From Eutreptiella sp. 'Long Island Sound 2002' (taxonomy: Eukaryota > Protista > Euglenida), in contig OZ038378.1 in the NCBI GenBank assembly GCA_964036045.1, positions 55,366,001-55,430,000 of the forward strand: a DNA stretch of 64,000 bases, written 5' to 3'. A program made the translations under genes and the position numbers. The stretch's first letter is position 1. Every line of letters begins with the position of its first letter. Below are positions 9,230 to 26,400 of this stretch, one piece after another. The notes under the pieces are model-generated. The model made no database searches and had not been told where the DNA came from. It was given only the letters and a program-made list of their open reading frames with translations.

Positions 9230-9537
9230 CGTTTTAAGACAGGAAATGAGGCCCCGATGAATTTTTCAGTTTCGACCCTCCTATCCCCCCTGTACCCAGG
9301 GACCCCATTTTTGGGGTGGGGGATTGGTTGGGGTGGGGGGGGGGGTCAAAGCATGTTTTAGATCCTCTTTACGCGGTTTTCACCTTATTTGGGTGTTGGA
9401 GGGCGGGGCTCCCAAGGGGGCCGGGGCATCCGCCATTTTACTTTAGCGGCGGGGGGGGGGGGTTGATATTGTGACCATTCACAATGATCAAATATCTTAT
9501 GTAATGCATGTTCTAGACCCTCTTCATGTGTTTATCA
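9230..9537. repeat. Dispersed repeat with internal sub-repeats, split by the LINE insertions (continues at 24285-24510)
   Basis: Variants of gatcaaagatcttatttaaagcatgctttagaccctctttatgtggttttcacc occur near 9350, near 9485-9533 (resuming at 24304) and near 24445-24500. Confidence 0.6.
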
Positions 9538-9673
9538 TTCGTCCCTCCTGGCCGCCGTGCAGGCACAGTCGGGGGGCTTGTAGGTGCGGCCACGGGCGCC
9601 TGAACTTGACTCGGCCCACCTCCCCGCCCCTTTGCCTCTGTACATAGGCCAGCGGACGCTAAAAGATGAATGC
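9538..9673 (+). mobile_element. Short 5'-truncated copy (3' end only) of the site-specific LINE family
   Basis: 9541-9672 aligns end to end with 24152-24283, the 3' end of the long LINE. It is flanked by cctcttcatgtgttt(a/t)tca at 9519-9537 and 9674-9692. Confidence 0.8.
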
Positions 9674-9949
9674 CCTCTTCATGTGTTTTTCATGCCTCTT
9701 GTTGTGAACCTGCACGTGGTGAGGCTGCCTAGCTAGGCTACAGCTCTCTTGAATTTTCTTTTGACGCTTCCGCGTCTTCCTTTGACTTCGCCCTCACGCC
9801 CTGCGCACGATGGGTGACCAAGTGGGGGTGGCCACCCAGCTGGCCGCCCTCCTACGGCGCCCGGGGGTGGCACCCAGCTGGCCGCCCTCCTACGGCGCCC
9901 CGCGGTCCTTACGGACATAGGCGCGGCACTGGCTCCTTTTCTCTCGCGG

Positions 9950-12150
9950 GTGCACCGCCCGCGACCGTCGACGAGGGGGCGGCGCGCAGCCGCTCCCGTC
10001 CCAAGGGGTGCAAGGGGGGCGGTGGATCGACCCAACCGCCCCCCCCCCCCTCCCCCTATTGCGGAGCAGGCGATGATCGCCTCGCTCCGGCTGAAAATTG
10101 CGTCCCTCGAGGGCAAAATCAACACCCCCCACCGCGAGCTGGCGGAGTCGCGGGGCGAGCTGGGCCCCGACGCGGCCCAGGGAAGCCGCTGCGGCCCCGG
10201 CCGCATCGACGACAGCGGCGGCAAAGGCCAAGGCCGCGACGAACGCCGCGGCTGCAGCAGCCGACAAGACGGATGCCTCCACGTCCCGGGCGGCCACTAA
10301 CCGGCGGCTGGCGGGGCAAAACCACAGCCGGCGTTCCAAGAACGCCCGGGCAAAGCAAGCCGCAGCACCTCCTCAGGGTCCCCCCCTCCCCCCCCGCACC
10401 CCAGTCCCCGTCCGTGTGGACTGGCACTAGCTCAGGCCAGCGGAGCTTGGAGCACCGCGACGGGTGCCTCTGCCGATCGGGGCATCTTCCCGCTCACCCC
10501 TTCGCCTCCTCGCAGCCTTCCTGGGCACAGGAGGACATCAAGACGGCCCGGGGCAACATCACCCTGTGGGGAATGGGAGGCGTCGCGGAGGGGTCCGCTC
10601 ACCCGCCCCCCCCCCCCCATTAGGCTAGCCCCGGTGGCGCGGCCTACGCCTCAGCGACGCGATCTGCTGCGCGGGGATCCCGGCCGGCTGCGGTGCGGGT
10701 GGTGGCGGCCGCTGGCCGCGCCAAGGCGGCACTCCCGCCAATACAACCCACGGCAGCGGCCCTCTGGGCCTTGCTCCCTCCGACGACGGCTGTGCAGCCG
10801 CTCCACCTCTACCAAGGTGAATCCCTGGACACGATCCAGGAATGGGGCATCGCCCAAATCACGCCGGGGCGACACCCAGCTGAATGGAAGCAGCCCTCCT
10901 AGGAGGGGGCCCTACGATGCCTGGGCTTGGTGGGCTGCACGGTCCACGAGGCCCACCTCGGCTGCACGGTCCACGAGGCCCACCTCGGCTGCGGCCGCCC
11001 TCACAGCGCATGATGGCGTCCAGCGCGTCACGGCGCTGGTGCGCGTCCTGGGAGGTAGCAAAGCGGCCCCCACGGTGGCGATCCTGCTGCAGGCACTCCA
11101 CTGCTCGAAGACCAGCCTCGCGGTACCGGTCACGTCCTTGCAGGGCGTGGTACGGACCGAGCGCCAACCCTGGGAAACGGCCGACCTGGAGGTGGTGGAC
11201 CCCTCGCCGCCGTGGCATGTTTTGCAGCTCGTCTGGGAGCGTCTCCCGGAGGATGACGAGCGGGAGGCGGCTGAGCTCCCGGACATAGATCCTGGCCGCT
11301 GGACCCCTTGCCGTCCACGGTCTGGGTCGTCTGCGTTCTGGACCCGGCTATCCTGGCGCATGCCGTCATACGCCGGCTCCACGTGGGGTCTCTTGGCAAG
11401 GACCACGCCTGGCGGCATCTCAAGCCGCTCATGGGGGCGGCTCTGCCCCACCCCCCGCCCATGCAGACAGCAGTCTGGGGGTCGAAAGTGGAGGTCTCTG
11501 CGGATCTCCCGTCGTCGGTGGCGCCGCTCGTGATGCATGCCAGCGGCAAGGCCGGGGGTATCCATTTCCGGCCGTGGATAGTCACGGGCGCCGCCTGCCA
11601 GCAACCCGCGTTCGTGCTGTGGTACCAGCAGCCGCCGGAGCGCCGCGGGCCCTCCCCGGAGGTCTGGAAGACCCTCGCCGAGGACCAGGAGCTCCATTCG
11701 ATGTTTGCGGGACTAGTGGACGGGGGTGCCCCCTGCAACGCGGGAGTCCGCATGTGGAAGGCCAAGCCAGCGGACCCCAAGGTGGTAGCGGACATCGCCG
11801 GCTTGCTAGGCACACCAGCCCCAGCGCAGATCACCTCTGTGCGGGTCCGGGGCTATCCGGCACAGCTGGGCCTGGCGCTGGACGAGTATGTGCAGCTGCG
11901 GCGCTACGCCCGAGAGGCTTTTGGGCCAGAGGTGCCCATCCGCGTCCACCGCAGCACCCAGTTGGCCCATGGCATCCTCAACCGGCCGGTCTTTGACCTT
12001 AAGCTGGAGGGGGTGCCTGAGGACTGGCCGGGTGTCCGGCTGGGCGCGCCCCACGCCCGCCTGCCTCACCGCCTCACAGCGGACCACCCGCAGCTCCCGC
12101 CAGGGGCGCTACCAGCCCGTGGGCCCCGCGGCCCGGATGACGCGCCTTGA
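9950..12150 (+). pseudogene. LINE ORF1 remnant (coiled-coil region plus globular region), broken by frameshifts and stops
   Basis: Protein-like segments such as MIASLRLKIASLEGKINT and VWVVCVLDPAILAHAV...RPVFDLKLEGVPEDW lie upstream of ORF2. No named domain confirmed. Confidence 0.55.
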
Positions 12151-14489
12151 GGGATTCGGGGAGGGCTAGCAGCAGGCGGAGGCGGCCCGGGGGACCCCGG
12201 ACCACACAGGGGATCTGGCCATGGCCAACGCAGAGTCGGCAGTGGTCGATGTGGCCGAGGAGGACGAAGACATTCTTTAATTTTCTTAACCCTCCTCCTC
12301 CTGACCCTTTGCCTACATGCGATGACCTACCCACAGTGGCTGACATGGGCCTGGGTGGTAAATTGCGGGGGCGCGGCGACACGACCACACTCCCGGGCAC
12401 CCTACCGGTCACGCCCGGTGCCGGTGACGGCGGTTATGGCAGCGGCTCGAGCTTCGGCAACCCTCCCCCTGAGGTGACCCCAGGAACCGGACCCACAGCC
12501 CGGCAGGAGGGTGTCTATACGCCCACAGCCCAAGCGGGCGCCCCGGGATGAGGTAATGGCCATGTGTTCCGGGGGAGGGGATCAGCCTGGGCGGTGGCAG
12601 GGGGCCCCACGCCGAAGTGGGGAGGTGGCGGTATGGCAAGGGGCACAACCGCCGTGCCACGGCAGATGCCCCTCGCACCGCAAATGACCGGGACGGTGGC
12701 CAGGGACCCCCCCCCCCCCCCCGCCCTCCCTCCCCCCTATGGGGGTAGCGGCGTCCGAGGGTGGAAAGGCAACGTGATCCGCCTAGCTGGGGAGCAAGGG
12801 GGGAGGGGAGCGCAGCGGCTGGAGATGACGGCGAGCCTGCGCCCGAGCCGGCCGACCCTAGTGCCCAGCCCGAGAGGGGCGCCGCCCATGGGACGGGCCG
12901 GTAGCGAGTTCCGCCTGACCGGGGAGCATTGGGGGTGGGATGTGCGACAGCTGAGGGCGACAGCGGGCCAATGCCCACGCCCACCCGTGCTGGCGCCTAG
13001 ACCAGCAGAGGCGCCAGCCCCGGCGCCCCGAACCGATCCCCCCCCCCCCCTGACTCCATCCCGGCTCCGCACAGGGCTGACATTGGTGGTAATGGCGGCA
13101 GGCTCAGCACCGGTTGGTTCCCCCTCGGGATGTGCCCGGGGCCCGGAACCTCAAGCCCAGCAGCTAGGTGATGGCTCTGGGGCCCACTCGGTGGCTGGGC
13201 GCCGCCCGGGCGGTGGCAGGGGGCCCCACACCGGTGTGGGGCGGTCGCGCAATGGCATGGGACCAAGCCGCCGCGGCGCTGTGGCTGTCCCTGGCGCTGG
13301 GCGCAGCCAGGGGCGTGCGAGGTGATCCCCCCCCCTCCCCTTCCCCCCACCTCTAGAACGGGCGGCGACCACGGGCCGGGCCGACAGGGTGCGCCGCCTA
13401 AAGGGGGGCTGGTTGGGATGGGCCCCACGACGGCGCGAAGCCCCCCCCCCCCCCCCAACGACAACGGCCCGGGCCCTCCTGCGACCTACCCTAGGCCTCC
13501 TACGACCTGCCACCAGCCTTTTTTGCCCATGGCACGTCGACCGCGAGGACGAGGACGAGAACAAGGCGAGGGCGCGGGCATGCGGCCCCGGCCCCCCCGC
13601 TCCCCTGGCACCGGCGACGGCACCATGGCCTCGCCCTTCTGCGCTGGTGATACCGCTAAGCCACCCTGGTGTTCCCCGCCCCCACCAACGCCGGGGATGG
13701 GTCATCACCGTCTGTGCCTTGGCCCACTTCGTGGGGCTGTGCCCCGGGGTCCTGCGCCTCCAGGACCTCGGGGCCTGGAACGGGTGGTGGCACACCCACC
13801 AGCAGCGCGGGGACAGCCCGGTCAGGCTGTCCGCCATCACGCGCGCCGGCGGCCCCGAGTTCGGGACCAAGGGGGCCACTGCCGGCCAAGCCCTATAGTG
13901 GAGGTACGCCCAGGTCCTCTACGCGCGCGCCCCCCGGCTTGACGCTCGCAGCGCCCGCAGCCCCTAAACATGGCGCTGGTCACGGGGGGCGCTCCTGGTC
14001 GGGACCCGACCCCAAAGGGAGGGGGGGGATCCCCCCCCCCCCTCTACGGACCCCAAAATTGTTGTACGGAACAATGTGCTTTGTCGGCGCCGGAGATTTT
14101 GTTTTAGGCATAGGGCACGGGGAAATTTTTTTGTGCGACCCTATGTGTCTTTACTCGAGATACTCAGAATTTCGTGCAGAATTCAAAAATGGCTAAAAAG
14201 CACAAAAAAGGATTTTGACCCCAGCGTGGCCTCCGGGTAGGACCTTGGCTGATGGGAGCCTGAGTTGATGGGCAATTTTTTTGAATTATTTTTGACCCCA
14301 CTTGTGCATATTCAAAATGATCAGTGTGTCATGGGGGTCATTTTGAGGTATTTATCTTGGGGTACCCACCGACCCCCCCCGGGGGGCCCGGCGGCTGACC
14401 GCCCGACCCGCCGACCCCTAAGGTTTGGGTCAACCAAGGGGGGGGGGAGGGCCCCCAGCCCCCCTTCGGAGGGCGAAACTGGACCAGAG

Positions 14490-16081
14490 CATGGCTGCTT
14501 CAGTTCTACGCCTCACAGCCGGGGGTCCGCGACCCACAAACAGCAGAGGTATGGGAGCAATGGGCACAAGCACAGCTACCGCCGAGGGTGCGGGACTTTG
14601 CACAAAGAGTGCTGTCGCACAAACTGACCGTGCATGCAAGAGTCTACAAGAGGTCGGGCACGGACAAGTGCCCGATATGCTCACAAAAGGAGACGGTCAA
14701 GCACGCGGTGGTCCAGTGCCCCATGTTCAAAGCGGCGGCGGCGGTGATACAGCACTACTATGACCCGGTGGAAACTAGGAACGGGAAGTCTGCAGTCCGA
14801 GACATGATGGAATCCGACCAACAGTAGTGGTTGCTGAACACGAATCAAGGTTGGGCAATGTGGTCGGCGAGAAGTGCCCACTGGCGATATCGATGCGAAG
14901 TCAAAGCAGGAGCATCACCGGTGTTCACATTGTACCTAACAACGTGGCTCAGGGAGCTGTGTGAATGGGTTGGGTTTTACTCAGGAGAGCGCAGGGAGCA
15001 GTGGAGAGGCTTCAAGCGGTCACTGGAGCAACTTCGAGATACCGGAGTGCAGCCGCGACAAGGGGAGGTACGAGTAAATGGGGGATTGAGTGCGTGGTGG
15101 CAGAGGCACACGGAGTGCTTCACGCAAGAACGCAACGCCGGCGCACACAGTTGGCATAGGGACACAGAATCACGCCCAAAGCGCCCGAGGCAGGCAGGCC
15201 CGGGAGTGCTTCAAGGAGTACAAGACCTGATTGCAGAATTGGTTGCGAAGGGTTACAGGATTGTGTACATGGACAGGTCATCAAAAAGACGGAGCCACAG
15301 GGACATGCGCAGGGCAGGTGGCTTTGGCGTATTCGCAACGGAAGATGAGCAAGGGCCTGAGGTGCGTTTCTGCGGCTATGTACCGACACGCCACAGGCAA
15401 ACAAACAACGGAGCGGAGCTTTGGGCAGCACTGGAAGCCCTACAGGGGTTCTGGGTGCCAAAACTGGCAATCCTCACCGACTCACAGTACCTGCAGCTGG
15501 GAGCGACCGGCAGGGCCCAACACTGGAAGTCAAAGGGATGGATAACCACATCCGGTAAGCTGCAGGTCCACGTGCCCGTTTGGGAAATGCTGCTCCGGGA
15601 AATGGCAGAGCCAGGAAGAGAAGTCAGGTGGGAGCACGTGCTAGCACATGTCAACGTGCAGGGAAATGAGGTGGCCAATGGATTGGCGATGAAAGGTATG
15701 TGCTCGAGCCCGCTGTGGTCCCGGCATGTCGCACAACAGTCATCATTCGGGTCAGAGTCCACAGTAGGGTTGAGGGGAGGTTCAGGATCCGAATCAGAAA
15801 ACACCAAAGCACTCTGGTCATCCCCGGGTATGGTACCCATGGATAGTGATGAGCTGGAAGGGGAAGCTTCGGGGAAACCAGCACCGCGTGGAATGCGATC
15901 ATATAACTCGAGCAGCTCGGGTAGTGAGGACGTAAGGACAGGACACACACACCAGGGAGGTTTGTTGGGTGAACTGTCTGCAGCAGAAACACTGTCCTTC
16001 AGCACAGCTGTGAGCGACACTAGGCGGCGACGTAAGAGGAGAAAGCTCAGCAAAAGCAGGAACCCTGGACAGGGTCGCTAG
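14490..16081 (+). pseudogene. LINE ORF2 C-terminus: zf-RVT Zn finger and RNase H1-type domain
   Basis: Zn finger WAQAQLPPRVRDF..CPICSQKETVKHAVVQCP, one in-frame TAG at 14825-14827, then RNase H motifs IVYMDRSS, QTNNGAELWAA, AILTDSQY, VRWEHVLAHVNVQGNEVANGLA. Confidence 0.88.
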
Positions 16082-17105
16082 CAGCAGAGCTAGCAGCAGA
16101 GCCTGTAGCCCCTGCATTCTGATGCGAAAATCTCACACGTTTCAAGCCCAACAATGCCTGCATGTCCGAAACTTGCGTTCTGGCGCAGGAGCTTTTTGTC
16201 GCGAGAACCGCGTCCTGTCGCGGCGTGCAGCAGCACACAGGTGTGACAACGACAGCGGCTGATCTCAGGCACAAACCCCGCGTCCTGTCGCGGAGGAGCT
16301 CCCGGGCGTGATGCCGCCGGGAAGGACATGGAAGGAGCAGGGACCACGTCAGCAGCGACATGGCCCCTACACACAAATACAGCCAGCCCCAAAGAAGGTC
16401 AAGCCTCAACAAGAACGCCAGCGTTTCAAGGTGCAAGCACTGACCCAACTGGACGCCATTGCGTACGAAGGGCTGAGGGCATCCAATGCCGAGCCGATCA
16501 CAATGGCTTGGGCCCGCAATTAGCAGATCTGGCTCCGACTCGGCCAACCACACAGCACCAGGATGCACTGTGAGATTGTGGACAATCATGGGGAGCCATT
16601 GCTGATGAGCAACCAAGAACTCTACTCAGTGATGGTCCAAATCAACTGGACCCTGAAGACTCAGGCCCTGACGAACATGCAGATCCAGTGGTAACCCATA
16701 AGTGCAGGCAAGTGGCACCCGTTCCAGTGGGAGGCGATCCTCCACTGTCCGACGGCTGAGGGACACAGAGCAGTGCCCTCCTCTGTGAGCAGAACTGCAG
16801 ACTGCATGCATGTGTGGCTGGCGGGCCAAGGTGACCTCTTACGGCTGTTTCAGAGAACGCTCTTTAGGCAGGCGGACCCGGTATCCAGAGACGCTGTGCG
16901 GTTCCTCTACACGCTGCTGAGCACACCCCCATGCGAAAGGCGATATGCCTGACAGGGGATAACACGCAGGGGGGAATAAGAAAGGTCGGAACAATAACCA
17001 CTCGTTGAAGCTAAGTTGGTATACCGCACCTCTTCTGTCCTGTGGAGGAGGGCTCCAACCGCGGGGGGGATAGAGATCCACGGAACGTCCCGAAAACCCC
17101 TTTAT

Positions 17106-17117
17106 GCTAGAGAGAGA

Positions 17118-17200
<83 letters not shown>
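17106..17200. repeat. (GA)n microsatellite
   Basis: Near-perfect GA dinucleotide run. Confidence 0.97.
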
Positions 17201-17206
<6 letters not shown>

Positions 17207-18069
17207 GCGCAATGGGAGGAGGGCCAGAGAGAAGGAGAGAGAGGGGGGGGGGGGGGCAGGAGAAAGAGAGAGGGAGAGAGACCCACAGAGCAGTAGACGG
17301 GGGCTAACCGGCACTGTGGGAGGGTGTTGGGTTCGAGCTGACCAGGGTGAGTGGGCAGCCAATGAAGCATAGAGTTGAACAGCTTACTGGTGAAACAACG
17401 GAAACCTTTGCGCCCCCAGAGCACGGGCGTGACACGTCATTACGTGTCAGAAAGCCTGAGCACGACAGGGGCAGTGAGAGTACGGCCTACGGGAGGGTGC
17501 TGGGTGCGAATTGACTTGGATATGTGGGCGGCCAGCGCGCACATGGTGTGGTACTGAACAGGTTAGCGCCACAATACAGAAAAGCACTTGTTGAAGCGTC
17601 AAGCAGAAACATCTTTTGGTGAAACGTTGAGACGCCGTTGCGCCTCCAAAGACGCCTTTGCGCCCCCGGACCTCGGGTGTGACATGTCTTCACGTGCCAG
17701 AGAGCAAGAGCAAGATAGGGGCAGCAAGAGCAAGACCCGCAGAGCAAGGGTTAGAGACCAACCGGCACTGTGGAAGGGTGGTGGGTGCGAGCTGACCTCG
17801 ATGTAATGATGGCCAAGGCCAAAGCACAGTCAGCAGCCACCTGGAGTGGTACAGAACTGGTCTGCGCTGCAGTGCAGCGAGAAAAAACGCTAAACTATGT
17901 GGTGATGACCATGCGCGTGTGACACGGGGGCGTATGCGAGCCCAAAGCCCAATATCCGTTGCCTCATGGCCCTTCGGAGGGGGGTGGCCCCCCCACACCC
18001 CCCCTTACAGCCCCCCAAACTGTCGAACACCCCTTGGGGTCGCACATTGGCTGGCGGCCGCCCCCGTGG

Positions 18070-21000
18070 TGCTGGTACCTGGCGCCCATGTGGCAGGAGG
18101 AGACGGGCGCCGTGTTGTGGCTACCAACCTAGCACGGCAGGGTGGAGATCTGGGGCGACCCCCCCGCCTGCTAGCACCTCCGCCCGCTCCGCCGCCTCAC
18201 CCTCTTCAAGGGGGAGACGGTCGCCGGCAGGCCACACCGGGGGGTGGACCGGTGGGCCCGGGTATGGGACAACGACCCCGCCCGCCAGCCCCCACCCCCC
18301 CCTGGCCCGCGGCGACGTGGCTGGACGTGGCCAATGCGGTGCGCGCCCTCCTCCCCCTGGTCACCGACGTCTGGTGGGCGGGAGCTAGGGGAGATCCGTG
18401 CCACGGCTCGGCTGCCCGACGTTCCCCGCCGTACCGACCCGGGGCTTAACCAGGACTTCATGCACGAGGTCGTCCAGGAAGCTCGCCGCCTTGCCGGGGG
18501 ATTGGAGCAAGGCCGCCCCCCCCCCCCCCCGCGCGCGAGCCCCCCCCCTCCTAGCGCTTGCCATGGGCGGGCCGCCACCTCTCCCTACGCCGCCCCCTGC
18601 ACCACCCGGCGCGCCCGCCCTAGGATGGTGACTGACGCCGACCGCTTGACCACGGTGCAGCAAGCCCGGGAGCAGAGATTAACCTGCAGGCATGCTTTGC
18701 TGCCCCTGTGGCCCCGCCTCTTGCACCCTCTGACCACTGGCGGCTGAGTACATGGGTGGGGCGGGTGGGTGGGTGGCCCCCCCTCTCCCCCCCCCCGCGG
18801 GGGCCACCAGGGCTTCAATCTTCCCCCCGTCCCGGCGGGGCACCGCCGGGTCTCCCCCCCATACTACTGCTGCGCTGCGGGGACGTGAAACCCACCTAGA
18901 GCCAAAGCGCGTGGCACACGCCAATGTCACATCCCTGCACCTGCACTGGCACATGGTCGCCGAGTGGCGCGCGGACGTGGTGCTGAACTCCCGGACCCGC
19001 CGCACGGCGTTTGCTCAACAAGTAATGCGCGCCCATGCCGGGCCCTCAGGAGGGCGAGCTTTCTCGGGGGCGCCCTTGGAGTCCCAGGGGGGGGGGGGGT
19101 TGGGATTCGCCTGCCGGGGAGGGTGGGCATCCTAGTTCGCCAGGGCACCCCCGCCAAGCAAATCCTCCCCCCCAAAGGGGCGCCTCGGAACGAGACGGAC
19201 ACCGTCGCCCAAACCCTGTGGCACTCCACCCGCTAGTGTCATGTGTTGGTGGGCCTGAGAGGGGGGGCTTTCCCTGCATGCCCAAGTGGCGTACGGCGTC
19301 TCCGCCCAGCCGGCCCTCAACCGGGTCTTTTGGGCGCGCCACGGAACAGCTGCCCAACTGGTCAGGGGGACCTCAATTTCGACCTCGATTACCTGGTGCG
19401 GGCACCGCCGTCCGTCGTGGTGTCCCTCATGACCCGCCGGCTGGTGGACGCGGACCTTGAGCTGGCGTCCGCCTTCAGGAGGGACCCCCTTTGCTCGTAC
19501 CAAGGCCCGGAGGGCACCCGCCCCTCGCGCATTGCCGGGCTGCTAGTCGACACGCGGTCGGCAACGGTGCTCCACACGGCGGAACGGCTGCCGTGTGGGG
19601 CCATCCCGGGCCATGCCCCGGTGCGCTTCGACCTCCACTTGCGGGGTTCGTCATAGCGGTTGGTGAAGTTCGTCCGCTTCAAGACTGTCGTGCTGGCTCC
19701 GCGGGAGGAGCATGAGCGGCTCCTCCTCATACAGGGCCTGCTAAACCCCCTGGAGGCCAGCTGGCAAGCGACCCTGTCCACCGGGGATGTGGACTTGGCA
19801 TGGGCTTTGTGGACCACGGCCGCGGAGGAAGAAACCCTCCTCGCCCTTGACTGCCCGGACATCACCCCGGACTCCCTCCCGGATGGGGCCACGCTCACGT
19901 CGGCACCCCCTCACCTCCCCTGCGGCTGGGGTACTGACCAGCTACTTCGAGAGGTGCGCCTCTGCCCCAAGCCACACCGGGACAACGGGGGGCCGCTTTC
20001 GTGCCCTGTGGCGCGCATCCATGCGGCCCACGGACCCCTCCGGCATGTCCTCTGCTGGTTGGAACGACCGGCGCCAGACGTGGGCGTGATGCCGCGCAGG
20101 GTGCAACAGGCATGGGCAGCGCTCCGGCGTCGCCTTGAGAGGCTCTGCACACTAGGCCCAGCGTATGCTAGCCTGGAGCTGGACGGCTCGCACGAACGGC
20201 TGGCCCAGCTGGCGTCGCTCCGCCGCCTCCACACGACGCTAGCGGGCAAGATCCGGGCCACGCTCCGGGTGGAGGAAAAAGACCGCCTCCACGGGTGGCG
20301 CTCCTGGCTGAGGAGGCCTAGTCCTCTGACTAGGGGACAATGTAACGGTGGCTAAAGGAGGAGTCATACGCCCCGCCGGTCACCTTTTGTCCAGGCCAGA
20401 TGGCACAGCCACGGCCAACGTGGTGGAAATGGATGGCCTCTTGCACGACGTGTGGCGCCCGATAAATTGCAAGTATGCGACAGACTCTAAGCCGGACCCC
20501 ACGGCCTTCATCTGATGATATGGGCACCATGTTCGGCGGGTCCCCATGAGTGCCTCGCAGCTGGACGGTCCCCGCCTACGCAAAGGGCTCTCCCGCATGA
20601 AGCCCTCGGCGTTGGGGCTGCACGGGTGGGGCCTAGCCGACCTCCGCTCCCTTCCTGACAGGCAGCTGGGCTGGCTGGCGCACCTCCTGCGAGAGGTAGA
20701 GCGCCTTGGCAAGTGGCCGACCCGCCTAGCCGAGGGCTACACGGCCGTGATGCCCAAGGAGGGCCCGCCGGGGCCCCTGAACACCCGCCCGCTCATGGTC
20801 ATGTCCCTGGTCTACCAGCTGTGGGCGGCTGTGCGCCTGGCGGACGCCATTGCGTGGTAGGAGTCCTGGGCCCACCCGGCGGCCTTTGGTTTCCGCCCCG
20901 CCAAGAGCGCCGTGGATGGGGCGGCGGTGACGCAGGTCCTCCTGGAGCGGTGTCGCCTCCGTGGATGGGCCGTCGCGGAGACGAGCATCGACTACGTCAA

Positions 21001-23400
21001 GTGTTTCGATCTCATCCCCCAGGCGGTCGCGTTGGCCCCGGGGTTGGAGCTGGGCATGGACCCGGGCACGTGCCGTGCCCTCAGGGCCATGTACCAGCAG
21101 CTCCGCCGGGCCTTCAAGATCGCCGTGGTCTTCGGCCCGTGGTGGCAGGCCACCAACGGCATCCTCTAGGGGTGCCCCCTGTCGGTGATTCTAGTAAACG
21201 TGCTCACCACGATCTGGAAATGAAAGGTGGACTCCCTACGCCGGCAGGTTCGTGTGGACGGCCGCCCTCCCCCCCGTTGTGGACGAGGACGCGGCGGAAG
21301 ACCTGGAGCCGGGGGCCCCGCTCCCCCTCAAGGATGCAGACCCCGGCTATGCAGCGCTTGGGTCGTCGTGCTACGCAAATGACACCCAAGAGGTGGCCCT
21401 GGGCGCGGCCTCCCTCCAGGGGACGGTGCCCGTGACGGAGGAGTGGCTGCTGGTCATGGGTCAGGACGTCCGCGTGGACAAATCTTGCTCCAGGGTCCAT
21501 GGGAACATGGCGCCCCGGCGGTCCTGCTCCGCCAAGTCCCGATCCCGCTGGTGGCGACTTTCCGCGAGCTCGGCATCCACGTCGCCATTGGGGGCTCCAG
21601 GATCACGTGGCCGGTGCTGTCCCGGCGCGTGGAAGCGGGACGGAGCGCCCTTCGCTGCCTACCCCACTTCTCCACCTATGACCGGCGGGAGCGGGCTGTC
21701 AACACGCTAGTCACCCCGCGGGCGCTCCATGGAGTGGTGGTCGCGTCGGTGACGGAACCCAACCTGCGGGGGTTGGAAACCGCGCTCGTGCGGGCCCTTT
21801 GGGGAGCCACGCGCCTGTCCCGGGCCAAGGAGGTTATCTTCACCGTCTCTTCCAAGGGCAACCGGGTCTCCCCAGTCATGCACACGCGTGACGAGCGGCT
21901 CCTCTAGGTGGCCTGTGTGGCCCGGCCGGCCGGGAGTCACCCGGGTTTTCCCCCAGGCCATCTGGGAATCGGGGGCCCTCCCGGGACGGGCCCGGTGGCG
22001 CGCGCGCTCCGCACAGCGGCCATCCTGGGCTGGAGCCCGCGCGAGGGCTGGTGGTGCTGGGGCGTCCCAGGGCAAGAGCACCCGCTGCAGTTCGTGCAGG
22101 AGCCCCTCCACCGGCTCCAACACCGGGTCCGGGACAGCCTTCGCTGCCATTCCTCGCGCCAGCTGGCGTGACGTCCGGTCACCTTCGGGGGACAGGGCCA
22201 CGGAGATGACGGCCGGGCCTGCCGCGCGGCACTCCGGGCGGCCTCCACCGGGTTGCAGAAGTCGCTGCTTCGCGGCCTCATGGCCGGGGCCATGTGGACG
22301 GCGGCCAAGGTGTCGGGCCACGGCACGCGGACCAATTCCGCGTGCCCCTAGTGCGGCGCGGCCCACGAGGACGAAGTCCACGTCCTGTGGGACTGCCCAG
22401 AGTGGGAAAATGCAAGAGGGACATGCCGCCCGTGGCTCAGCGACGCGGCGACGGCGATCCCCCACCTGGGACCGCCAGACCATTGGCCATCGTGCCTGAA
22501 CGCGGGCCTATTCCCCCTCCGACTGGCGCAGCGGGTGGACCGGGGGCTCCTGGACGAGGTCCTGTACCGCCTATACGGCATGTACTTGGCGGTCCTCGCT
22601 GCCCGCATGGCAGCCGGCAGGGACACTAGCCGGACCACAGGGACTCCCTCTTCCCGGACCAGTCGCGTCCGCTGCCCCGCAACTCCTATCTCTGGGACGA
22701 TTTCGTCGACCCTTGCCGGGGGACACAGTCCGCCACCAACCACGGCTCCAGCCGGGGACCCCGCTGGGCTAGCGGTGGCCCGAGGATTCCATCCACGACT
22801 TGGTCCGCTCGGCCCGGTCGCTGGCCTGGATGCCGGGGCCCGCGGAGGTCTCCCTGGCTGAGCTGCCCCTAGATTATGAGGCGTTTGTGGGGCGGGCTCT
22901 CCTAGCCTCCCCGGACCACCGCTCACTCGTGCCTGTGGGGGGCCGCGTGTGCGCGGGACTTTCGGCCCGCCCGTTCTTTGCGGCACGCACGTGAGGTGAT
23001 GCTGCAGCTTATGCGCTTCGCGACGCACTGCCGGGACTCGTGGGTCCGGCGCCTGTCAGCGCCTGCTGCATGCGGTCGCCGTTGGGCGACCGCTTGCTTA
23101 TGGACCATTTCCCACGACCCCTCGACGGGGGGCCCCCTCTGCTCCAGTATGCCAGGAGGCCCCTGTGAGCGCCGCCAAGAAGGGTCCTGCTCGCAGCCCC
23201 GCAGCGTAGCCGCCCGCCAAGGGCAGGCAGTGGCACGCAGGGCGTGCTCTGCTTCGAGCATGGGGCGCCGTTGTGCGCCAGGTGCAGAAGCTTGGGCTGG
23301 GGCATCAGCCGCTACTGCTAGGCAAGCCACGACGGCCACACTAGCCCCTCAGCGGGCCCACGCTGTCCGAGAGTCCTGCCCCGGGTCACGCCAGGACGCC
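18070..23400 (+). pseudogene. LINE ORF2 remnant: APE endonuclease, reverse transcriptase and C-terminal Cys/His finger
   Basis: APE motifs: HANVTSL, ADVVL (~18915-18990), GDLNFD (~19365), GHAPV (~19610). RT motifs: AVMPKEG..TRPL, AFGFRP, SIDYVKCFDLIP, GIL*GCPLS (~21160), YAND (~21375). Zn finger CP*CG..EDEVHVLWDCP (~22345-22395). Several in-frame stops and frameshifts. Confidence 0.9.
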
Positions 23401-26400
23401 AGGTGGTCGTCCCTGAGGGCCGGCGCACAGGGGCGGCCGGATTATCCTCGATGCTGGGGCGGGCCTGCCTAGCCTCCCAAGCACTCCCGAGCTCTTCCCC
23501 CCTGGCGGCACGCTGGTGGACGGCACCACCCAGGGCGTTGGGTGGCCGCCCCTCCTCGGCATTGGGGCCACATGACCCCAGGCCAAAAAAAAGGCCGGTC
23601 GCCTGACCTCTTGATTGACCGGGGGGACTGCGTAGGTGAGAGGCCACTACAATGGGGCGGGGGGGGGCTGCTGATCCTTGCTCCCCCCCACCTACGGCAG
23701 GGAGGGACGGCAGCCCCGGGCCGGTGCCCGCAGGCGCCTCCGCCTCCACCGGATCCACCGGGGCGCCGCCCGCACCGCGGGACCCACCCCCCCACCCCCA
23801 GCCCTGAAGAGCAGCCCCCGCCCCACCGCCGGCGGCCGAGCCGCCGGCGTTGTTCCCTGAAGTTTTGAGCCGCATCTCAGCGGCCTTGAGTACCCGCGCA
23901 TTGCCGCGGCGACGACCCCCCCCCCCCGCGGGGTCAGCAGCGGCCTCAGCCGCAGGCCACTAGGTCAGTGGCGGACATGCTCCGCGCACGCCCCCCCCCC
24001 CCCCTCACGCTGCGGCTAGTGCCGCCGGGGGGGAGCTCCTGTGACCCAATGGCGGACGTGCCCTCGGCGCCTTCGCCATCCTAGTCCTCACTGCCGCCAC
24101 GGCGGCAGCACGGCAGGGCCAGCACGGAAGAGACCTAGTCCCCTCCGGTTTGTCCCTCGTGGCCGCCGTGCGCACAGAGGCGGGGGGCTTGTAGGGGAGG
24201 CCACGGGCGCCTAAACTCGCCTCGGCCCACCTCCCCACCCCTCTGCCTCTATACATAGGCTAGCGGACGCCAAAAGACGAATGTCCTCTTCATGTGTTTT
24301 TCACCCCATTTGGATGGTTGGAGGGGGAGTGAGGCATCTCCGAAGGGGCTTGGGGACAGCCTGCCTATGCGGTCTTCCACCCTGGGCAACTGAAAAATGT
24401 ACATTTACGAAACCGATTTTTTTTCATATTATGACCAGTCACAATGATCAAAGATCTTATTTAAAGCATGCTTTAGACCCTCTTTATGTGGTTTTCACCC
24501 TATTTGGCCGTTTGCACAGCGATGGGGGGCTGCTGAGTGCTTTCGTTACTAAGTGATTGTCGGTGGGCAGGGGGCTGGTTGCGGCACCTTTAGCCTATAG
24601 CAACCCTACTTAGTCGTGGTCTCACAGCCCAGGCCAAAACCCCAAGGCAATACATATGTTTGGTGCGGTCGGTATCATACTGCCTGATGTGTGGTAGTTT
24701 ATTGGGGCAGGCATGCATTTTACATCAGTGCAGAATGGTGTCTGTGGCGTGGCCATGTGTGAACCGATTTGAAGATATGCCTGCATTCTTGATTCTGCAT
24801 ATGCCTGGGCCAGGCTTTGTGAGCACCACCTAATTGTATGCCCACAATAATGGGCCTTGGACCCTCTGTAATGAGGGCAGGTTGGATTTTCCCTGTTGAC
24901 GCATGCTATCCACGAGATTGAGTCAGCGAGCAACGGATTTGGTTTGTGTGCCAGTGGAACGCAGCAGGAACCCGTTGATTGTGGTCTCAGAAGAGATCTC
25001 TTTGAAATGGGGGATCCGGTACAGATCACCTACCCGCCTCAAAACCAGTGCAACACACCCTGGTGTAATTTCAAAAACTTGCGATCTGCTGGTCCTATGG
25101 TTGTTGGATTTCGGGTTTTTGGTTCTATTGTGTTTGCCGAGCAATCATGCGAAAGACAGAAGGTACAAAAGTAGAAAGAGACACTATCATGCATGTCCTT
25201 TACATTGATGGGACGATGTTGGCGGTTGGTGGTGATGGCAAAATGTCAATTTGCATGGCATAGTCAAAAAGGGATAGATCATCTGCGTAATGCTTTGTAT
25301 TCCTACATTTTGGAAAATAGCTTTTCAACACAGACAAACAAGATGTCCTGTAGGAGCAGCAGTTGCATGTGGTCTTCGCATGCAAAGAAAACGCATTGAC
25401 AACAGCAGGGTCTTATAAATAGGGAATCCCATCTACACTATTTTTATCCTTGTAGAGAGGCTGCATTGCTGCCAGGTCAATCCACGTTAGTTTGCATTGA
25501 AATAAAGGAAATTGTTATGTTGGGTCATGTGCATGGGGATATGTGGCAGGGGTACTGGCAAACGAAACATGTCATCGACCTTAGCTTAATGGGGCACATT
25601 GCAGGGGGCAGTCTTCAGAGAGTCTCTTCTCCAAACGAAGAAAAAGAAAGATGCTTTGTTGGGTGATGTGCTCTCAATCGTAAATGGTGCACAGTTTGGG
25701 TATGGGCCCCACGACATGGTATATTTTAGTATTGCATTTGGTGTAGCAGAAATTCGAAGTCGCCAATATGTCGGAGGAGCTTTTGCTATGCCCGCAGATG
25801 TTAGGTGTAACAGTTGATGCAAATCAAGAAGGGTGTAGGGGCCTACATTGTATAGGGCCGTTCCTTGTCAGCGTGTGAGCTGTGAAGGGGGCCGTGCTAC
25901 TCAATGCACCCCACGTCACAGTTGATGACCCAAAGAAGGAGTTGCAGCACTGTGTGCACCAAGTATGCCGGCTTACATAGATACTGCTTTTGCTGAAGTG
26001 TATGGTGTGATGGATCCCTAATTCTTTCTAGAGGGGGCCCAGTCTCTCGGAAGCGGTGACTATACCCTAGCTCACCGTGCACAGTGTGGCTAATTGTGGC
26101 CTACAACAAGCATTCTGGGAGCACTAGATGTGGAAGGAGGCAGCATTAGCTGCAAAAACAAGCGGGGCGTGCAATTAACAGCGACAAAGTAGTATTCACT
26201 AATGGGGACCCGCTTGCAATTCATGCTAGTGTGATTTTGAGGGGGGGCTCATCACCGGGGTAAAATCCTTGCAAATATCCAAAGCATGGAGCACTGTGAC
26301 AACACCCTGCACCAACAACCCCAAAAGGCACAACAAGCGGAAGAGTAGAACCTCGTCAGCGAACCAATACAGAATCTCTTCAAGGTGTGCAATGGATACG

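Follow-up and report, generated by a model that had tools for sequence, protein, structure and literature searches.

Among the described retrotransposons without long terminal repeats (non-LTR retrotransposons) that insert at a single site, Tx1L of Xenopus, a member of the Tx1 clade, targets a single site within the internal tandem repeats of Tx1D, a DNA transposon, while R1 of arthropods is specific for the 28S ribosomal DNA (rDNA), is of the apurinic/apyrimidinic endonuclease (APE) type and forms head-to-tail arrays with duplicated target. In Euglenozoa, CRE1/2, SLACS and CZAR are inserted in the genes for spliced-leader RNA and use a restriction-like endonuclease. The CRE/SLACS/CZAR class is covered in PMC4640811, and the trypanosomatid elements ingi and L1Tc carry N-terminal 2A peptides (PMC3708506). 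Here we analyzed a family of long interspersed nuclear elements (LINEs) represented in a 64-kb stretch of Eutreptiella sp. 'Long Island Sound 2002' contig OZ038378.1, which is called the window below and to whose positions all coordinates refer unless another locus is named. The original prediction for this stretch had proposed two tandem insertions of an undescribed, APE- and reverse transcriptase (RT)-encoding LINE into one 19-bp target within a dispersed repeat. Our results make it very probable that the window contains members of an autonomous APE-type LINE family which inserts by target-primed reverse transcription (TPRT) at a single defined position within the ~199-bp unit of a dispersed tandem repeat.

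The check proposed for this prediction was a genome-wide tabulation of the sequences following the LINE 3' end. The 3'-terminal 145 nt of the window LINE had 780 candidate matches in the genome (2.28 Gb); 30 loci were fetched from these, and 26 independent 3' junctions constituted the sample after three segmental duplicates had been dropped. Twenty-four of the 26 abut the same base of the same repeat. The exact 19-nt 3' end of the LINE occurs 233 times in the genome compared with no occurrence in the control, and TCACCC is located 16-18 nt downstream in 163 of these 233 exact ends, a placement with a chance expectation of ~0.07%. The exact 3' ends not followed by TCACCC are expected to have mostly mutated cores, as is the case in the sampled loci. 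When the first 14 nt of the LINE were searched and displayed with 21 upstream bases, 76 matches were obtained versus 10 in the control, corresponding to ~60 genuine full-length ends; in ~56 of these the target lies directly upstream, separated by a single additional base that is usually G, and all four full-length 5' junctions that were read individually follow the target as well. The LINE family is thus sequence-specific as predicted, with the large majority of copies residing at the same target nucleotide.

Three further features of the 5' end were observed. The extra base (mostly G) between the target duplication and the first conserved LINE base could stem from the cap or have been added without a template. 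The LINE's first bases resemble the start of its own target (9693-9706 compared to 9674-9687) at 10 of 13 positions, a likeness that is marginal by chance. At G000:C4:155923950-155923984 a 5' end has 20 nt of a second 5' end in front of it, as if the LINE head had served as target.

The expectation that the target belongs to a dispersed repeat was borne out: it is part of the ~199-bp unit, which is organized in short tandem arrays at no fewer than 2342 candidate loci on all large contigs. This repeat had no Rfam match even at E = 1, and the idea that it is a miniature inverted-repeat transposable element was rejected, since terminal inverted repeats were not found. Rfam matches were likewise absent from the LINE, the target and the 5' end, as were ribozymes resembling that of hepatitis delta virus.

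The target-site duplications (TSDs) range from 13 to 28 bp in 5'-truncated copies, measure 19-20 bp in full-length ones and co-vary with the local variant of the host repeat; individual values are 13 bp in L002, 16 bp in L028, 19 bp in L034, L038 and L042, and about 28 bp in L043. Because the TSDs match the local repeat variant and empty sites are common (52 unoccupied target sites in the sampled loci), the copies represent true insertions into pre-existing sequence. The nearly identical 30-40 nt after every copy, together with the retention of the core TTTTCACCC even at two unusual sites, could also be taken to mean that a 3' tail belonging to the LINE itself follows GAATG and is shared with a SINE-like (short interspersed nuclear element) or satellite partner, and that the specificity is that of a co-mobilised tail. 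The sequence from GAATG to the core, however, varies with the local repeat subfamily and recurs upstream of the 5' junction as TSD, the L045 copy is flanked by an unrelated 18-19-bp TSD, thousands of arrays of the repeat are free of LINEs, and the repeat shows no similarity to the LINE body by BLAST, all of which renders a co-mobilised tail highly improbable.

Insertions were found on nearly all large contigs and in both repeat subfamilies, with differing truncation points (13448 to 24136 in window coordinates) and TSD variants but with the junction at the same base. Such a distribution speaks against a regional preference, or an amplification of arrays after insertion by unequal crossing-over or segmental duplication, as the source of the clustering in place of enzyme specificity. 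Tandem arrays are prone to unequal exchange, and L003/L004, L006/L007 and L014/L015 are indeed segmental duplicates with identical flanks, yet we consider this explanation of the overall pattern very unlikely. The sequence-specific family comprises at least 233 copies, ~60-200 of them full-length, and probably exceeds 780 copies.

Single arrays can be hit more than once: loci L016 and L018 each carry two separate family insertions, located in distinct repeat units at distances of 357 bp and 1.3 kb. At L006/L007/L050 (G000:C25:23598668-23608667) a 149-bp 3' stump abuts an inverted second truncated copy of the same family, and a duplicate of this entire arrangement lies at a distance of 7.2 kb.

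In the window itself, the 19-mer, which contains one W (A or T) position, has three exact matches, while no match occurred in 100 shuffles. All three sites had been placed correctly by the original prediction; its spelling of the motif misses one T, so that a search with the motif as typed finds two. Host repeat, target copies and LINE copies are arranged as follows, all on the plus strand.

9348-9518, plus strand: host repeat, about one degenerate unit, with an unoccupied target site at ~9364-9387 (window searched by BLAST with the repeat unit).
9519-9537, plus strand: target copy 1, one base unlike copies 2 and 3.
9538-9673, plus strand: copy A, a 136-bp 5'-truncated LINE stump covering the conserved 3' module (identity to other copies).
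9674-9692, plus strand: target copy 2, exact 19-mer match.
9693-13980, plus strand: 5' part of copy B, with 5' leader, remnant of open reading frame 1 (ORF1) and an inter-ORF region with internal repeats ~619 bp apart.
13981-18066, plus strand: nested 5'-truncated LINE of an unrelated family (zf-RVT and RNase H), ~4.1 kb, absent from other copies.
18067-24284, plus strand: 3' part of copy B, with ORF2 remnant and 3' untranslated region (tblastn and colinearity with other copies).
24135-24284, plus strand: conserved 3'-terminal module, ending in ...GAATG plus one base, no poly(A) (identity among copies).
24285-24306, plus strand: target copy 3 (24285-24303, motif match) running into the TCACCC core (24301-24306).
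24307-24510, plus strand: remaining part of the host array, including a further unoccupied target site, ~24479-24500 (BLAST of the repeat unit).

The window holds ~2.2 repeat units with three potential sites, one of which was struck twice. The 3' fragment predicted between target copies 1 and 2 at ~135 bp is present and measures 136 bp, and both window LINE copies terminate in ...GAATG plus one base without a poly(A) tail, in agreement with the common 3' end base that had been noted. Target copies 2 and 3 enclose 14.6 kb, of which ~10.5 kb with 70% G+C are the LINE's own sequence. The 5' end of copy B is common to all 40 scored genomic matches as well as to L042, L037 and L033, and its 5' part is colinear with other genomic copies. 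The repeats in the spacer between ORF1 and ORF2 (12570-13295 in the window, L042:3964-4943), ~619 bp apart, vary in copy number among copies.

Exact tandem junctions, in which the 3' end is followed by the target and the 5' end, were detected five times genome-wide in addition to the window and L037, and they account for ~10% of the full-length 5' ends. The 136-bp block exactly precedes the full-length copy in the window, and the few other loci with the same junction would likewise be compatible with a terminal direct repeat built into the element, i.e. an LTR-like or split-repeat architecture. This possibility is refuted by the full-length copies in L042 and L033, which have host repeat and not the 136-bp block directly upstream. 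The five exact tandem junctions also stand against ~56 target-preceded 5' ends, the length of the upstream partner varies between 136 bp in the window and 2.8 kb in L037, and the stump (9538-9673) shares 94-95% identity with the 3' ends of other genomic copies as opposed to 86-88% with the 3' end of its neighbour (24149-24284), which leaves a built-in terminal repeat with a virtually negligible probability. Because the block is missing from L042 and L033 and the stump is nearer to other copies than to the neighbour's 3' end, it represents an independent, severely truncated insertion. The tandem insertions of the original prediction, which had named a block on all intact copies as the contrary case, therefore stand as independent events.

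The prediction of a full-length LINE between target copies 2 and 3 held with respect to the presence of the LINE, while the element is neither uninterrupted nor intact. The segment 13981-18066 is a nested insertion because window position 13980 is joined directly to 18067 in five other genomic copies. It is flanked by its own 10-bp TSD (13971-13980 and 18067-18076, from the junction sequences) and matches the Pfam families RNase_H (2.7e-19) and zf-RVT (1.4e-08). The G+C content is ~70% in 10000-14000 and 18000-24000 and ~57% in 14000-18000. The nested LINE also contains an AG microsatellite (17109-17202) and internal repeats of 250-450 bp and lacks a poly(A) tail. Extra blocks of 5-6 kb in the copies L039, L040 and L049 were considered as a deleted coding part and rejected, as they are unrelated nested inserts; a 989-codon open frame (L040:2702-5668, plus strand) was noted within the 6-kb insert nested in that family copy.

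Copy B itself is decayed, and both LINE copies in the window are dead. Codon-position G+C periodicity marks coding sequence at ~11100-12300 and ~19200-22800, and translation of these stretches revealed motifs of an RT, a CCHC knuckle and the last part of an AP endonuclease. The coding remnants of copy B are listed below.

10742-12277, plus strand: ORF1 remnant with frameshifts (tblastn of L035:816-2318, 52-74% amino acid identity; codon periodicity).
18830-19650, plus strand: AP-endonuclease domain remnant (tblastn of P0018).
20354-21640, plus strand: reverse-transcriptase domain remnant (tblastn, 71-78% identity to P0018 and the L044 ORF).
22343-22396, plus strand: CCHC zinc-knuckle motif 3' of the RT, interrupted by a stop (translation; aligned to the CCHC region of R2).

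The window copy carries private stop codons and frameshifts. Two in-frame stops that were checked are private CAG-to-TAG changes; the TAG at 20858-20860 within the RT remnant is private to this copy and is CAG in other copies. ORF1 comprises 501 codons in L035 and had no match in Pfam or the ESM Atlas and thus no recognisable domain. Family proteins cover 18830-22765 of the window by tblastn, which places the end of ORF2 at ~22765, and the copy L044 retains an 812-codon open RT frame. P0018, a gene model from another copy with 79% identity, exceeds the Pfam cut-offs for both Exo_endo_phos (26.2 bits, cut-off 24.5; 30.6 bits in P0045) and RVT_1, the latter also being above cut-off in P0047 and P0003, so that the predicted combination of APE and RT was upheld. 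YADD is present in P0018, the catalytic motifs of the APE are kept in 18 sequences, and the family profile matches human L1 ORF2p at 1e-31 over 540 residues and R2 at 4e-24. All top Foldseek matches of the APE model were ExoIII, APE1 or L1-EN, although with a predicted local distance difference test (pLDDT) value of 48 the AlphaFold model is weak and these matches are suggestive only. The CCHC motif is also backed by weak zf-RVT matches in L044 and P0047, and Pfam detected no RNase_H after the RT in P0018, P0047 or the 812-codon ORF of L044. With an RT, an APE N-terminal to it and the hallmarks of TPRT, namely a shared 3' end, 5' truncations of variable extent and TSDs, the family is an APE-type non-LTR retrotransposon.

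In the window copy, Pfam found neither RT nor APE in any open segment (all segments of at least 50 amino acids, both strands), a result that would also be obtained if the 10.5-kb unit were a non-autonomous retroposon without its own RT that is mobilised in trans by another site-specific LINE. For the family this is refuted by the L044 RT frame, by the RVT_1 matches of P0018, P0047 and P0003 together with the Exo_endo_phos match of P0018, and by the mapping of family proteins to 18830-22765, while codon periodicity and RT and APE motifs argue against it for the window copy as well; we assign it next to no probability. Within the autonomous family, the internally deleted copies L033 and L037 may depend on other copies.

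A decayed 2A-like motif was identified by motif alignment at ~18880-18905, directly before the APE domain. The motif resembles class A and consists of a leucine run, CGD-V/I and P-H-P-G-P, with His in place of Asn. It is intact in L035:4707-4865, L042:6179-6271, P0018 (residues 48-60), P0049, P0053, P0054, P0061, P0064, P0072 and P0080, while the diplonemid relatives P0102, P0114, P0117, P0121 and P0147 have the canonical NPGP at the same place. Judged from the sequence, this putative 2A peptide is placed as in ingi/L1Tc but ends in HPGP, not NPGP. His at the 'invariant' Asn position of 2A is rare in class A (PMC12338488).

The geometry of the junctions suggests how insertion may proceed. The LINE ends in GAATG at a fixed 3' junction, and the bottom-strand nick is placed immediately upstream of the 19-20 bp duplicated as TSD; the full-length 5' junction is likewise precise, 19-20 bp downstream, after the TCA of the core TTTTCACCC. 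Two off-target events narrow down what may be recognised: L003/L004 is inserted at a second TTTTCACCCTA within the same ~199-bp unit, and L029/L045 at a non-repeat look-alike with its own 18-19-bp TSD. Apart from the core (T)TTCACCC(T)A, which lies at equal distance from the 3' junction, these sites have nothing in common with the canonical site. We infer that recognition depends largely on this core, located 14-24 bp downstream of the first nick, and that the second strand is broken inside it, after TCA. The duplicated site is used again, which gives head-to-tail arrays; in the array of the window the 136-bp stump is followed by the full-length copy, and the 19-bp duplication flanks each of them. 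Because only the downstream TSD copy would retain the core intact, new copies are probably added on the 3' side.

The last 150 nt of the LINE have a mean pairwise identity of 95.2% versus 77.6% in the 850 nt upstream, a contrast present in 147 of 147 pairs, although the loci were picked by likeness to the window 3' end and the conservation of the module is somewhat inflated. The module is 95% conserved across subfamilies that are >20% divergent elsewhere. Since dead copies decay evenly, the contrast reflects selection on active lineages, and the 150-nt module is probably recognised by the reverse transcriptase.

Besides this sampling effect, several points weigh against the proposed family and its mode of insertion. 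The assignment of domains draws on better-preserved copies and on gene models of other copies, given the negative Pfam result for the window copy, and the structure model of the APE is of low confidence, as its pLDDT of 48 indicates. The role of the core motif is built on only two off-target events, and occupied and empty sites have an identical consensus that provides no further information on recognition. A long hairpin predicted at the 3' end has no compensatory changes and a non-significant z-score of -1.6. The relative age of the two window insertions is undecidable from a single base difference.

A more far-reaching interpretation, which we regard as possible but rather unlikely, is that the specificity arose independently in a LINE lineage specific to Euglenozoa by means of the distal core (TTTTCACCCTA), 14-24 bp from the first nick, with the nick position being measured from the binding site and not read by the active site of the endonuclease, and with diverged subfamilies keeping the 150-nt module and the landing pad. 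If true, this would be a novel mode of protein-DNA targeting for LINEs of the APE type, with a His-for-Asn 2A-type peptide in front.

Among named sequences, the RT is most closely related to LINEs from Diplonema papillatum, D. ambulator and Flectonema, with 28-38% identity. Word-based protein searches yielded only Euglena and diplonemid matches plus one dinoflagellate (Polarella), and an exhaustive protein search, in which the closest diplonemid LINEs had 30-38% identity, returned diplonemid-named matches or unnamed metagenomic proteins, with no Tx1-named protein among them. Since the nearest relatives are diplonemid LINEs, the likeness to Tx1 and R1 appears to be one of analogy only. The family resembles Tx1L in the order of APE, RT and CCHC, in its strict specificity for a dispersed repeat and not a gene, and in the fixed 3' junction and TSD; in contrast to Tx1L, its host is a euglenid and not a vertebrate, its target is without terminal inverted repeats, the LINE has a length of ~10.5 kb and an ORF1 without recognisable domain, and a 2A-like motif precedes the APE. 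With R1 it has in common the tandem arrays formed when a regenerated target is hit again, the absence of poly(A), the precise 3' end, variable 5' ends and a TSD of >10 bp, whereas its target is a non-genic 199-bp repeat without Rfam match and not rDNA, and its TSD measures 19-20 bp.

Similarly, ingi and L1Tc of trypanosomatids belong to the same phylum, Euglenozoa, and combine APE and RT with a 2A-type motif directly before the APE. The family differs from them in its strict target specificity, in the His for Asn of the 2A-like motif and in having no RNase H after the RT, the RNase H of the window belonging to the nested foreign LINE, and it carries a CCHC motif where ingi has C2H2. CRE1/2, SLACS and CZAR are also site-specific non-LTR elements from the same phylum, but the family has an AP endonuclease N-terminal to the RT and its target matches no RNA family in Rfam, which places it outside this group. 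No description of this LINE family or of site-specific LINEs of Euglena was found in the literature searched, consistent with the original suggestion that it may be undescribed.

To our knowledge, almost all site-specific examples of the APE type come from animals, and the site-specific elements that we know to be described in Euglenozoa use a restriction-like nuclease. Site-specific LINEs illustrate how a selfish element can persist by means of a harmless multi-copy landing pad, and they are also investigated as natural tools for inserting DNA at defined sites. The present family is a new protist example of a repeat-targeting lifestyle already known from animals; it is a well-populated case with a clean target, with two informative off-target events that narrow the recognition core, and with subfamilies that keep the 3' module and the target while diverging elsewhere. 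About a third of the Euglena genome sequence consists of unclassified repeat (PMC11252322), and the description of this family helps the annotation of repeats in that genome.

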